A DNA stretch of 64,000 bases from Octopus sinensis (GCF_006345805.1 NC_043007.1:19282001-19346000), one strand, 5' to 3'. Positions 41,046-51,937 are shown, counted from the first letter of the stretch. The notes: generated by a model from the letters alone, not told the origin. A program made the numbers and translations.

Positions 41046-41056
41046 CTGGGGAACGT

Positions 41057-41067
41057 GTTAAGGAAAA
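41057..41067 (-). promoter_or_regulatory. U12-type (minor spliceosome) branch-point sequence TTTTCCTTAAC
   Basis: Sense strand reads ccaTTTTCCTTAACacgttccccag|exon; branch A at -13; matches the U12 consensus TTCCTTAAC at the expected 10-20 nt distance. Confidence 0.92.
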
Positions 41068-41942
41068 TGGCAGAATATTGTGGGGTGGGGAAAGGGCTTT
41101 TATTGGAAAAGAAAGAGCATTAAAAGAACAAAATCATCATTATTATTATTATGGTTAAATACATGATGAAAAGACCTCCACTGCAACATCATTTTGGAAT
41201 TAATCCCCATCCATCAGCCGAGCAGCAACAAAAAACTCTTCTTCTTCTTCTTCTTCTTCTTCTTCTTCATCTTCTTCATTATTATTATTATTAATATCAT
41301 TATTATTATTATAATCTTAATTTTTAATATACTATAGATTTTCCACCTCTGTATGTCTCTCGATAGTAAAAATTGGTTTTGGGTGTTGGTCATATCTCAT
41401 TCTACACTTCAATATATAATTGTACATACCCCTGGCCAATGCCATTACCACTTGATTGGTCCTGTGCCAGTGGCACATAAAAAGTGCCATTGAGCGTGGT
41501 CATTGCCAGTGCCGCCTTACTCACTCCCATGTCAGTGGCACGTAAAAAGCACCATTCAAGCATGGTCAATGCCAGTACTGCCTGGCTGGCCCTCATGCCG
41601 GTGGCACATAAAAAGCACCCACTACACTTTCAGAGTGGTTGGCATTAGGAAGGGCATCCAGCTGTAGAAACTTTACCAGATTAGATTGGAGTCTGGTACA
41701 GCCTTCTGACTTGCCAGTCCTCAGCTAAACCGTCAAACCCATGCCAGCATGGAAAGTAGATGTTAAACGACGACGATGATGATATATATATATATATAAT
41801 TGCATTCTTTCGTGTGTATATATATGCATATATGTGCCTGTTTCCATCCAATCGCCTTCATTTCATAAATATGAATGAATTTGTTGAATTTTGTTTAAGT
41901 TAAATCATATACTGATTACACATATATATATATATATATATA

Positions 41943-42497
41943 CGAGGATGAATCAAAAAGTAATGCCATTTTCTTTAGGATAGGTATAATTACCAACACA
42001 GGAACACATATTAGACATCAAAATGAAGCTTATTATGAATTTATTGTTTTTCCTTTTGAAAAGAAATCAACCAGAATGACACCTTGAGCATCCAAAAAGA
42101 CAGTTGCTATGAATTTTCCAACTGACTTTTGCGTGTTGATCATTTTCGGTGGTGGTAACATAGAGTGGTGTCATTCCATTGACTGCCTCTTTGATTACAG
42201 TTCATAATGCTGAACCCATGTTTCATCGCCTGTTACGAGCCTTCGAAAGAAGGTGTTGTCTCTTTGACTTTGTAGTGAAGAAGTGGCTCAAAGAACAATC
42301 AACAGAATTTTACAGCGCAGGGATACATGCTCTCATTCGAAGATGAAATATTGCTATTGAGAGAAACGGTGACATTGTTGAGAAGTAGGGATGTGATCTC
42401 CAGAGGACCAGCTTCATTTCGATGTATGATACACGTTCTTGTGTTGGTAATTATACCTGTCCTAAACAAAAGGGTATTGCTTTTTGACTCACCCTCA
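41943..42497. mobile_element. Internally deleted and rearranged mariner relic
   Basis: About 90-bp inverted termini in a TA context; minus strand VTGDETWVQHYE..SKRQSME...ATVFLDAQGVILVDF; plus strand VKKWLKEQSTEFYSAGIHAL...NGDIVEK-stop. Confidence 0.85.
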
Positions 42498-48824: not shown

Positions 48825-51348
48825 TTTAAAAATAAAATGGACTCTCCCCTCATTAGACGACGGATGAGAGTTTGGCATTTTCATGCTGAACAACGACACA
48901 GATGATTTGTATATATATATATACGATGGGCTTCTTTCAATTTCCATCTACCAAATCCACTCACAAGGCTTTGGTCAGCCCAACAATCATCAGAAAAGGC
49001 TGTAAGGAATAGCTTGGTGCAATCGCTTTTCCTTCTGGAAGTCTGAATGTGCCACATCCATTCAGCTGTTTTTATATCTGCTGTAAAATCCAGAATGAAA
49101 TTGTCCTGTTTGGAACCGAGGGAGAAAAACTTTTTAGTTCACCAGAGTTACATCCCTTGGATTGAGATCTGGAAAAAAAGCCCATCATAGTATGTTGGAT
49201 ACTTACTTGTAGGGTGGGGCTGGACCAGGTAAGAGAAGAGTCATGTAGTCAAGTGGAGTGAATAGGGATGGGAGATGGTTGCGGAGGTAGTCAATATGTA
49301 TTTATGTATGTACATGTACCACAAATGGATGTAGCAAGTCTTATATTTATTCCTCAGATTTTAGATGGGGGAAATAGCTGAGATGTTGCTAACCAGTATG
49401 CTAAGACAAACCTGCACTCATGTGGACAGGATTAGAAAATTTCGCTCCTACGATTAAGATAGGTGCCTGGGTGAAAAGAGTTCTTTAGTATGATCCTCTT
49501 CTCAGCCAAGCAGAACCTGCAACTCCAACTACCATAAAGGTGAGGCCTATATTTTCTTACTATCCTCTGTCACTGTCTCTGTGTGTGCGTGTGTATATAT
49601 ATATATATATATATATATATGGGGGTGGGTATGTATATACCTGCACAGATGTGTATGAGTGTGTATGCATATTGATTGTAATATATGGTATGTTTTAAAA
49701 ACAAATTTAAAATATTACATTTAAATTAATATCAAAAGAAAACAAGTTAGATTAATAGCAAAAATAACAAAATTAAAATTCACAAAATATTTTCAAAGTT
49801 GTTAAAAGAAATCCAACAGAAACAATAACAACAACATCAGTAACAATGATAATGAATATCTTTTGTTGTTGTTTTTTTTTAACTAGACATAATGCTAATT
49901 ACCTGTAACTATTGACTGCATTACCTTTAATTATTTACTGGCTCTGGAGGAGATGGAAGTTAAAGTTTGACAATTTAGTTAGAAATCAGACCATTGTTTT
50001 AATGGATTAATTAATTAATCAATCAATCAACCAATTAATTAATTAATTAACTTGAAACAGCCTCTAATATTCTAGAACAAGACCTGTTCTCGGTAGAAAG
50101 GTGAATGAAATCTAAAATGTCCCTTGTCAATCCATCGAATCCTGTTTCAATTCCTTAGTATTTCTGGACCTGTGGAACAGTTTGCAACTGGGAAGATGGC
50201 TGTTTTGGGGTACGGACGTTGTGGCAATAGGGAGAGAGAAAAAGAGAGGTAGGTAGGTAGGTAAGTAGGTTGATAGGTAGGTAGATAAATTTATAAATAG
50301 GTTGGTAGGCCACTAAGTACCCAGATAGGTAGGTGGGATCCTTACTGTAAAATGGGTGTTGTTACAAGTACCCAGATTGGTAGGTAGGATCCTTACTGTA
50401 AAATGGGTGTTGTTACATCACCGTTATCTGTTGTCCTGCCCCGACAAGGAACTGCAATGACTTTGGGGCTGAAGGAAAACAGTTACAGGTAACTGCCTTC
50501 AAATACTGATGTGGGGTGGTCAACAATTATGATGACCTCTCTGTCCAGTATTTAGTCTGACACTGATTTCACTGATATTGCTGGACAATGAAAGATGAAA
50601 CGAATCAACTACAAAGAGAAGTGCCCAATACTGAATTAAATGCTGCAACCAGTTTTTGACTGCATTGGGTTTTTTTTCCCATTACATGTGAACACACACA
50701 CACACACACCTATAGGTTTATCAAAGGCCCTCTGCACAGTTTCTTGATTGCAGCTGCCTGACGAATGAGGACATAAAACTCGGAGTAGCAGATTTTGTGT
50801 TGTTTTTGTGGCTTTAATAATAAAAACAAAACATATTACTCTACCTGTGGCATTCGAGTACTATTTTTTTCCCACCTTGTTTCGCATTTATGTGCTTACT
50901 CATGTACATATACATATCTATATCTATCTGTCTATCTATCTATCTATCTATCTATCTATCTATCTATCTATCTATCTCTCTCTCTCTCTCTCTCTCCTCT
51001 CTCTCTCTCTCTCTCTCTCTCTCTCTCTCTCTATATATATATATATATATATATATATATATCAAAATACAGACACATCTAAGACCTGTGCTGCTTTGTG
51101 ACTCTGGTTATTAATATCTGGCACAATAATATTTACCTTTCAATAAACAGTAAGTGCTGCGTTCTCTCTGCAGCTTGTAAAACAGATGCAAAGAATCTCT
51201 GATGAGGCTTTAATTAAAAACAAAACTAGTTAGTTCAACCTGTTTTATGAACTGCTGTAACGCTTTGTTTGAACCAAGGGGGTCTACCTATTAAAAGTGT
51301 ACACACTCACACGTGCACACACAGACACACACACATAATACCTAGATA

Positions 51349-51714
51349 TCTCTCTATATATAAACGGCAAAATATGTGTGTGTGTGTGTCCTTTATACAA
51401 ATCCACAATTTTTCAGTTAGAGGGCTCGCACTTTCTATGATCATTCAAAACTGTCCAAGGGTGGTCGTGCACATCTTTACATTTCCCCAGTCACCCTGCA
51501 AAGCCATTCAAAAATCAATAGAAGTGACTTTTTTGTGGATTTTCTATCCAAAACCCAATGAAAATGCCCGAAACTTGATACGCCAATTGAATGCCAGCTA
51601 GCTGTATGTGATTGGTCGGAGATTTGGACAGTACTCGAGTGTATGTGTGCACGCACGCAGCTGTATATGCATGCACGAGCACTATGACCTGGTGTTGCCG
51701 GGTCACAGTGCTAG
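51349..51714 (+). mobile_element. Non-autonomous Helitron, different family
   Basis: 5' TC(tctctatatataa), 3' hairpin gacctggtgttgccgggtc then acagtgCTAG; sits between A and T. Confidence 0.8.
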
Positions 51715-51929
51715 TACAATATATAAACAAAAATGGGGGAGAAGCGAGCGGTGCTAGGGAAGGCCAGGGTAGCAAAATCAACAGATTGATGTTTGTTTGC
51801 AGGGTTCCTAATGCTGGATCATTCTGAGTTCCCATCAGGGCCCAACAACATGTAGAATTGGAGTTTTGATTTTTTTCGTTTCTCTTCTTTTTTTTTGTTT
51901 TTTTTTTCTGGTTTCAGTTTAGAACGAAC

Positions 51930-51937
51930 AAGGATAC
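51930..51937 (-). promoter_or_regulatory. U12-type 5' splice site GTATCCTT after exon A
   Basis: Sense gtatccttgtt; U12 consensus RTATCCTT. Confidence 0.9.

Follow-up and report, generated by a model that had tools for sequence, protein, structure and literature searches.

The PLCB4 locus of Octopus sinensis

The DNA analysed here, a window of 64 kb from the 2.72-Gb genome assembly of Octopus sinensis (G000:C11:19282001-19346000), carries on its minus strand the 3' half of an orthologue of PLCB4, comprising the last 15 constitutive exons, together with one alternative exon, of this phospholipase C (PLC)-beta gene. The gene model was derived from the exact spliced alignment of protein P0001 to the window, and all the evidence considered below comes from sequence, annotated proteins and transcript assemblies. 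A first-pass annotation of the window had recognised a mollusc PLC-beta gene, and this assignment can now be made more specific: the product is a 100% match to the Octopus RefSeq isoforms designated "PLC beta-4(-like)", and 83-85% identical to vertebrate PLCB4 over the Y/C2 region. Solved PLC-beta structures also match the octopus product (E = 1e-81).

Between the upstream constitutive exon E1 and the common downstream exon E3 lie the alternative exons A and B (Table 1), which are homologous, arranged in tandem, of identical length (85 nucleotides, nt) and in the same phase (phase 1). Their amino-acid identity is approximately 55% over a 31-residue tblastn match, flanks included, obtained with exon A as the query. 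The end of E1 at 55261 is set by the exact spliced match of P0001, and its acceptor reads cag/GGT at 55403/55402 (here and below a slash marks a splice junction). When exon B is chosen, the upstream U2-type intron from E1 extends to 47711.

Table 1. Exons, introns and splicing signals of octopus PLCB4 in the 64-kb window
Feature	Position	Strand	Remarks
E1	55402-55261	-	upstream constitutive exon; PLCB4 residues ~575-621, start of catalytic-barrel Y half
U2-type intron, E1 to exon A	52023-55260	-	GT-AG ends; pyrimidine tract at acceptor, no TCCTTAAC
TGCATG	52043-52038	-	16-21 nt 5' of exon A
Exon A	52022-51938	-	alternative, 85 nt
U12-type donor of exon A	51937-51929	-	GTATCCTTG, 8/8 to consensus
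Hybrid intron A-B	51937-47711	-	4227 nt; U12-type 5' end, predicted U2-type 3' end
Exon B	47710-47626	-	alternative, 85 nt
U12-type donor of exon B	47625-47617	-	GTATCCTTG, 8/8 to consensus
U12-type intron used with exon A	51937-41046	-	10892 nt; junctions 51938^41045 reproduce P0001 exactly
U12-type intron used with exon B	47625-41046	-	6580 nt; B-type proteins read ...LDFVD/YNKRQ
U12 branch-point sequence	41065-41057	-	TTCCTTAAC; branch A at 41058 (-13), then acgttccccag
E3	41045-40973	-	common downstream exon; own donor perfect U2-type, CAG/GTAAGT (9/9)
E4	38421-38318	-	
E5	37240-37138	-	
E6	35090-34926	-	
E7	34154-34055	-	
E8	33718-33614	-	
E9	32257-31994	-	
E10	30720-30492	-	
E11	29449-29383	-	
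E12	27333-27158	-	
E13	25717-25616	-	
E14	23888-23744	-	
E15	22137-22069	-	last coding exon

Splice signals flanking the two alternative exons

The first-pass annotation had proposed that both alternative exons end in a donor of the minor (U12-dependent) spliceosome, and this proves to be so: the same perfect sequence is present twice, as CAA/GTATCCTTG at exon A and as CGA/GTATCCTTG at exon B. The consensus of the major spliceosome, the U1 consensus CAG/GTAAGT, is matched at only 5/9 positions by the exon A donor and 4/9 by the exon B donor, so that their use as U2-like donors is unlikely. A 12-mer spanning the exon A donor, CAAGTATCCTTG, agrees at 11/12 positions with the human PLCB4 minor 5' splice site CAAGTATCCTTA. 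The 13 remaining donors of the window (E1 and E3-E14) are of the GTRAG type and match the U12 donor GTATCCTT at no more than 5/8 positions; that of E1, GAAG/gtacttca, matches at 3/8 and is not U12-like.

The common acceptor, ttTTCCTTAACacgttccccag/TTATAAT, from which the exon begins at 41045, has only a short pyrimidine run, and it is the sole U12-type 3' end among these introns. Donor and acceptor together fit the GT-AG subclass of U12 introns, with its donor consensus RTATCCTT and its branch-point consensus TCCTTRAY some 10-15 nt from the 3' splice site. The 50 nt before exon B (47760-47711) are T-rich and end in ttgcaag/. No U12 branch site was found 5' of exon A or of exon B, the best match before exon B being 5/8, and a scan of the whole 4227-nt A-B intron with a relaxed pattern revealed no branch-site-like motif. 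Since its pyrimidine tract is long and a U12 branch site is lacking, the 3' end of the A-B intron is probably U2-type. The other splice-site readings of the first-pass annotation likewise stand: a common acceptor with a U12 branch point, branch A at -13 and a short pyrimidine run; U2-type acceptors at A and B with no CCTTAAC before B; no U12-like donor among 13 others; and introns of 4227 nt, 10.9 kb and 6.6 kb, with which the coordinates in Table 1 agree.

Taken over both strands of the window, GTATCCTT occurs three times where 2.4 occurrences are expected, which is no excess over chance; the only two minus-strand copies fall exactly at the frame-preserving ends of exons A and B. The branch-point sequence TTCCTTAAC is found five times against 0.6 expected, once at the common acceptor and four times at ~13.2-13.9 kb, where these copies are explained by an unrelated tandem repeat that bears the sequence in each unit. 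The repeat itself has a period of ~200 bp and extends over ~13200-13960 on the minus strand, far 3' of the last coding exon E15. The sequence CCCTTAAC at 47441-47458 on the minus strand, ~170 nt 3' of the exon B donor and with an AG 11 nt further on, might constitute a cryptic U12 3' splice site; this CCTTAAC with AG near 47458, the single match to a shorter relaxed pattern, is probably due to chance.

Conservation of the arrangement among animals

Comparison at the DNA level covered the loci of Aplysia, Biomphalaria, Ruditapes, the brachiopod Lingula, the annelid Owenia and one cyprinid fish; a survey of the isoform listings of 30 protein clusters supplied, at the protein level, the evidence for nemerteans, echinoderms and ecdysozoans. 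All five lophotrochozoan loci share the octopus layout of an 85-nt exon A, then an 85-nt exon B, two U12 donors and one U12 acceptor, with a spacing from A to B of 1.6-4.5 kb in every species compared. The donor reads GTATCCTT in 11 of 12 cases in six species, octopus included, the exception being exon A of Aplysia with GTATTCTT, where by our own reasoning pairing could be kept as a G-U wobble. The common acceptor of the five species carries CCTTAAC, with the branch A 9-15 nt from the 3' splice site. Between phyla the introns are otherwise unalignable, and the U12 signals and TGCATG are the sole intronic features conserved across them. Chance motifs can be ruled out as the source of the octopus signals, because in five further species, drawn from three phyla, the corresponding exon borders bear the same motifs. 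Retention of both U12 donors and the CCTTAAC acceptor in related species was also the check that the first-pass annotation had set on its own proposal, and all five retain them, with the one variant donor of Aplysia.

Both isoform types are annotated in Owenia, Patella, Gigantopelta, Haliotis, Pomacea, scallops, Dreissena and the nemertean Lineus, while Tubulanus, Chaetopterus and Babylonia are represented by B-type sequences. The scallop B exon (P0149, P0152, P0154, P0156) is five codons longer (…AANAILRHAIHSGTCSGIID) and, at 100 nt, still of length 3n+1. A single exon type was found in Ptychodera (12 proteins), Diadema (14), Lytechinus/Strongylocentrotus (14), Asterias (14) and Acanthaster (8), and also in 15 shark and ray proteins, all other listed vertebrate proteins, an onychophoran and Priapulus. 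In the PLCB4-like gene of the cyprinid fish there is one 85-nt exon, with GTATCCTT as its donor and TTCCTTGAAT as the branch site of an intron that lies at the same codon. As judged from these loci and proteins, the design is not peculiar to molluscs or to octopus; it appears to be old and widespread in Lophotrochozoa.

Several irregular gene models were encountered in this survey. In Sinocyclocheilus (L007) a block consisting of the upstream exon, the 85-nt exon and the common exon is present twice, at 22310-24839 and 25338-28395, with identical exon-flanking sequence; the repetition is due either to an artefact of assembly or to a tandem duplication of three exons that is very recent. The PLCB4-like gene of Priapulus caudatus (L017) is intronless (3567 nt, 1188 amino acids), and is a retrogene or a cDNA-derived sequence in the assembly. 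The Bulinus truncatus protein P0023 reads through the U12 donor (...EFVKYPSLTC YNKRQ, encoded by AAG TAT CCT T..), and the only Lingula model, P0104, is B-type and truncated at 857 amino acids despite an intact A exon in the locus; both look like gene-model errors arising from the U12 donor.

Isoforms in protein sets and transcript assemblies

Both octopus isoforms are already present in RefSeq. Nine Octopus proteins were found in the databases, from O. sinensis, O. vulgaris, O. bimaculoides and one further record: three contain exon A (P0001, P0125, P0127; RefSeq/GenBank) and six contain exon B (P0121-P0124, P0126, P0128). Exon B is found also in the assembled mRNAs of the P0004 cluster. This Logan RNA-seq assembly cluster has 17 products, 15 of them listed, which are ~83% identical to octopus PLCB4 over the whole length and 91% over the Y/C2 region, and which presumably derive from other cephalopods. 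They run to 1190-1216 amino acids encoded on contigs of 4.1-4.8 kb, and so represent spliced mRNAs. Each of the full-length products listed has one of the two exons, A or B, and none has both; in the isoform sets of over ten species, too, the exon is A or B, although frameshifted products would be missing from such sets. No product of the length expected for inclusion of both exons (~625-651 amino acids) was found among the 15 listed members of the Logan cluster. Two short Logan products, P0137 (607 amino acids) and P0141 (603 amino acids), end just after E1 with unrelated peptides (VSESHLFVPFVS and ARDRKSVV respectively, each followed by a stop) and do not contain A plus B; their source may be poison exons, or alternative 3' sites, located between E1 and the alternative exons in a related species.

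Origin of the exon pair and of the U12-type intron

A tree built from the 29-residue peptides of these exons places all 15 B exons to one side of a branch (support 95/93); the A exons cluster with the single exons found in deuterostomes, in Priapulus and in the onychophoran. Over the same 29-residue exon, A exons have a mean identity of 73% to single exons from outside Lophotrochozoa and of 47% to the B exon of the same species. On this evidence exon A is best regarded as the ancestral-type copy and exon B as derived. That the B exons form one group fits a single ancient duplication, and it agrees with the suggestion in the first-pass annotation that an exon was duplicated together with its U12 donor. 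The simplest reading would be one tandem duplication of exon plus donor before molluscs, annelids, brachiopods and nemerteans separated, after which A remained conservative and B diverged and went on evolving.

The intron itself appears to be older than the exon pair. The first-pass annotation had advised looking for an orthologous minor intron in other PLCB genes, and human and mouse PLCB4 are indeed listed as minor-intron genes, with introns of 339 and 319 nt respectively (Olthof 2019 supplement, PMC6717393), which are too short to hide a second exon. The human intron has the 5' splice site CAAGTATCCTTA and the branch site TTTTCCTTAATA, and the mouse intron AAAGTATCCTAA and ATTTCCTTAATC (PMC6717393); the position of the human intron was inferred from its CAA/GT context. 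In octopus, a paralogue of the PLC21 type has a single exon, its donor reading GTATCCTTT, and its U12 intron at the same codon measures 917 nt; the corresponding point of the Y domain is marked by U12-like branch sites in three further PLC paralogues. These signals agree with the published figure of 60% of PLC genes with minor introns (Baumgartner 2019, PMC6865273). The simplest reading of these comparisons is that the PLC family would have inherited the U12 intron from its ancestor. In another octopus PLC paralogue (L012; G000:C17:22644700-22645200) the sequence at this intron position is TCCTTGAC and then ...gttcac/ATATAAC, with no AG, which suggests an AT-AC U12 intron there.

Components of the minor spliceosome in octopus

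The octopus genome was searched for the four small nuclear RNAs (snRNAs) specific to the minor spliceosome, and all scored above the Rfam cut-offs: U12 at 126.6 bits, U6atac at 96.9, U11 at 94.5 and U4atac at 83.8. Their recognition boxes are intact, with GUAAGGAA in U12, AAGGAGAGA in U6atac and AAAAGGG at the start of U11, and the PLCB4 branch-point sequence TTCCTTAAC is complementary to GUAAGGAA of the octopus U12 snRNA gene. U6atac has 43 genome matches above the Rfam cut-off compared with 2-5 each for U11, U12 and U4atac, and the excess may reflect a family of copies or pseudogenes scattered through the genome.

A proposed splice lock and the alternatives to it

We consider it likely that octopus PLCB4 contains a splice lock of the type described for JNK, in which incompatibility between splice sites would enforce the inclusion of one exon per mRNA. 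We propose that it arose when an exon lying just before an ancient U12-type intron was duplicated in tandem along with its U12 donor, which would give the order E1, U2 intron, exon A with U12 donor, hybrid intron, U2 acceptor, exon B with U12 donor, U12 branch site and acceptor, E3. The major spliceosome would pair the E1 donor only with the U2-type acceptor of A or of B, and the minor spliceosome would pair the U12 donor of the exon so retained only with the U12 acceptor of E3. Joining of A to B would be barred because it combines a U12 donor with a U2 acceptor, and joining of E1 to E3 because it combines a U2 donor with a U12 acceptor. Each productive mRNA would then hold exactly one of A and B, and the hybrid intron is predicted to be unspliceable as a unit. 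The 85-nt (3n+1) exon length would provide a back-up, in that a leak giving either both exons or neither shifts the reading frame, and the junction that follows joining of A to B, AA/C TAG, would be an immediate stop. Each alternative exon could be defined across itself through U11-59K and U2AF, U11-59K being known to bind U2AF and so to bridge the exon (PMC8034651). The joining of a U12 donor to a U2-type acceptor is disfavoured (PMC1874599, PMC3584512), and U2/U12 incompatibility has been reported for five of 629 human clusters of mutually exclusive exons (PMC5740500). We infer that spliceosome incompatibility, and not the decay of mis-spliced RNA, keeps A and B apart.

Several considerations weigh against this interpretation. 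The 85-nt length is by itself sufficient for exclusivity at the protein level, and since a product containing A and B would be frameshifted and truncated, its absence from protein sets is weak evidence. Conservation of the U12 donors is forced by their shared acceptor, and taken alone is no proof of selection for exclusivity. Commitment of E1 to A and of B to E3 within the same transcript would leave an unspliceable hybrid intron, which is a cost of the design; and published work has shown that the major spliceosome, once the minor one is inhibited, can skip exons lying around minor introns. Transcripts stuck with the hybrid intron, together with such exon skipping, imply a lock that is strong and not absolute. 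In Aplysia the acceptor of exon B has, 12 nt before its AG, the sequence TACCTTGAC, a near-match to the U12 branch site, so the lock in that species (L005; donor 28836-28843, acceptor ~32390-32415) may be leaky or built differently. The automatic either/or switch envisaged in the first-pass annotation accordingly needs qualification: the architecture, its conservation and the finding of A-or-B isoforms all favour it, but the 85-nt frameshift amounts to a second enforcer, which sequence by itself does not tell apart from the lock.

The most serious rival makes that second enforcer the principal one. On this account mRNAs containing A plus B, or neither exon, are made in appreciable amounts and eliminated through the reading frame and nonsense-mediated decay, the U12 signals being inherited baggage. 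It draws on the 85-nt length of both exons in all six species, with the scallop B exon, longer by 15 nt, still 3n+1; on the stop at the A-B junction; on the blindness of protein databases to frameshifted products; and on the report that in 60% of the human clusters of mutually exclusive exons the lengths are not multiples of three (PMC5740500). We nevertheless think it improbable, because it requires a consensus U12 donor, matching U1 at only 4-5/9, to be joined to a U2 acceptor that has no U12 branch site, and because nothing of the length expected for A plus B appears among the 15 listed Logan members. The lock and decay are compatible with each other, and decay is best taken as a back-up to the lock; sequence alone cannot separate the two.

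Other explanations would make the type of splice site irrelevant, attributing exclusivity to RNA secondary structure (docking and selector sites), to steric hindrance or to trans-acting repressors such as Rbfox. The conserved TGCATG beside the alternative exons does point to trans-acting regulation, and a scan of the region for docking or selector structures returned many inverted repeats (767 pairs); but these are mostly interspersed or low-complexity repeats with no sign of conservation, which made the scan uninformative. Regulators pick an exon but do not alone bar double inclusion, and besides TGCATG only the U12 signals persist in the introns of different phyla. We therefore regard structure or trans-acting factors as a very unlikely basis for exclusivity, and steric hindrance is excluded by the length of the A-B intron, 1.6-4.5 kb in every species. 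It is scarcely credible, finally, that A or B is a dead duplicate or an annotation artefact with no real alternative splicing behind it. The RefSeq isoforms are, it is true, computational models, but exon B occurs in full-length spliced mRNA assemblies (4.1-4.8 kb, 1190-1216 amino acids), over at least four phyla neither A nor B has lost its open frame, its exact length or the invariant catalytic residues, and the B exons have evolved as one coherent group in the tree. A dead pseudo-exon was rejected on the strength of the B-containing mRNA assemblies and the conservation across phyla.

Effect on the protein and choice between the exons

Exons A and B both retain an invariant MSSF(N/S)E, and the differences between them cluster in the following 14 residues (in B, GLSLIKHSCLDFVD). 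We take MSSF(N/S)E to be the strand with the substrate-binding Ser522 (PLC-delta1 numbering), succeeded by the next helix of the Y-half barrel, and the swapped segment presumably ends just before the SRIYP strand, encoded by the common exon, with Arg549 and Tyr551 (in the same numbering). This structural placement rests on alignment to solved PLC-beta chains and on PLC-delta1 numbering. An AlphaFold model, computed from 35 sequences with Patella PLCB4 as the first row, had a predicted local confidence (pLDDT) below 50 over residues 585-715 and was not interpretable.

The choice between A and B would probably be set by regulators acting at the two U2-type acceptors, and we infer a role for Rbfox. 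The Rbfox-type motif TGCATG stands 15-24 nt 5' of exon B in Biomphalaria (L009), Ruditapes (L010), Lingula (L006, twice) and Owenia (L008, twice); for at least four of six species to have TGCATG in a 21-nt window, given each species' own intron background, P is ~5e-6. The core GCATG is present within 140 nt 3' of exon A in Aplysia, Ruditapes and Owenia. In octopus a TGCATG lies close to exon A (Table 1), and another 112 nt 5' of exon B. The motif positions suggest an ancient Fox-type control of exon choice, perhaps rewired in octopus. A profile search of the genome for the Fox-1_C domain (PF12414) gave no match, a miss that does not show absence. In its fullest form our proposal would be that PLCB4 of Lophotrochozoa contains a module locked by the minor spliceosome, which originated once, before molluscs, annelids, brachiopods and nemerteans separated, and has persisted since then, and in which a conserved Rbfox-type UGCAUG ~20 nt before exon B would let an ancient cell-type-specific factor choose between two forms of a catalytic-barrel segment in a Gq effector enzyme. 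We advance this composite picture tentatively, as a possibility that falls a little short of probable.

Novelty and implications

Searches of the literature revealed no paper that describes an exon pair locked by U12 signals, whether for PLCB4 or for any gene of Lophotrochozoa. The first-pass annotation had known of no such description for a mollusc PLC-beta, and searches on PLCB4, U12, exclusive exons and molluscs likewise found none. A genome-wide survey of minor introns covered O. sinensis and Lingula without mention of the design (PMC10639083). The mechanism and the mammalian PLCB4 minor intron are thus already known, and it is the case in PLCB4 of Lophotrochozoa that was not found described.

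This case would add an independent example of a hybrid-intron lock to a list consisting almost entirely of vertebrate JNK and a few human predictions, and the lock design would emerge as a recurrent and durable outcome of duplicating an exon beside a minor intron. It makes invertebrates available as test systems for spliceosome incompatibility and for the regulation of genes with minor introns, and it predicts two catalytic-core variants of lophotrochozoan PLC-beta-4, a Gq effector. It accounts too for certain errors of annotation, such as the read-through in Bulinus and the single isoform given for some species in the protein sets used here. There is also a bearing on the persistence of minor introns: with two donors dependent on one U12 acceptor, conversion to the U2 type would be harder, and the intron may be frozen as U12-type.

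Comparison with known systems

The closest parallel to the PLCB4 exon pair is provided by exons 6a and 6b of JNK, with their U12/U2 hybrid intron (Letunic 2002). That the hybrid design was known from this system had been stated in the first-pass annotation, and the literature bears it out: in vertebrate JNK genes exons 6a and 6b are separated by an intron whose 5' end is of the U12 type and whose 3' end is of the U2 type (Chang et al. 2007, PMC1874599; Turunen 2013, PMC3584512). JNK (MAPK8/9/10) and PLCB4 have in common tandem homologous exons with U12 donors, a U2 3' end between them, a single U12 acceptor and an upstream U2-type intron; in both, one exon per mRNA is predicted, and both encode signalling enzymes. 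They differ in that PLCB4 is another gene, with an independent duplication, in Lophotrochozoa and not in vertebrates; that its 85-nt exons add the frameshift back-up; and that it is JNK2 that has been dissected experimentally.

The human PLCB4 minor intron resembles that of octopus both in its 5' context (CAA/GTATCCTTA compared with CAA/GTATCCTTG) and in its branch site (TTTTCCTTAAT compared with TTTTCCTTAAC), and the intron is found at the same codon, after FVN or FVD and before YNK, both in the PLCB4-like gene of the fish and in the PLC21-type paralogue of octopus. The mammalian intron of 319-339 nt has one upstream exon, with neither an alternative exon nor a hybrid intron, whereas that of octopus measures 6.6 or 10.9 kb and has two donors.

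As regards exon choice, exons 5A and 5B of C. elegans egl-15 are mutually exclusive and are controlled by Fox-1 and ASD-1, and Fox proteins usually repress an exon from a position close upstream. The egl-15 exons and vertebrate Rbfox-controlled exon pairs are like PLCB4 in having (U)GCAUG close 5' of one exclusive exon, the likeness for PLCB4 being one of motif only. C. elegans is not known to have a minor spliceosome, and the exclusivity of the egl-15 exons rests on other means. The twintrons of Drosophila prospero and Urp resemble PLCB4 in placing alternative U12 and U2 sites in one region of a gene, but they are nested introns with shared or overlapping ends, and not duplicated exons separated by a hybrid intron (PMC3584512).

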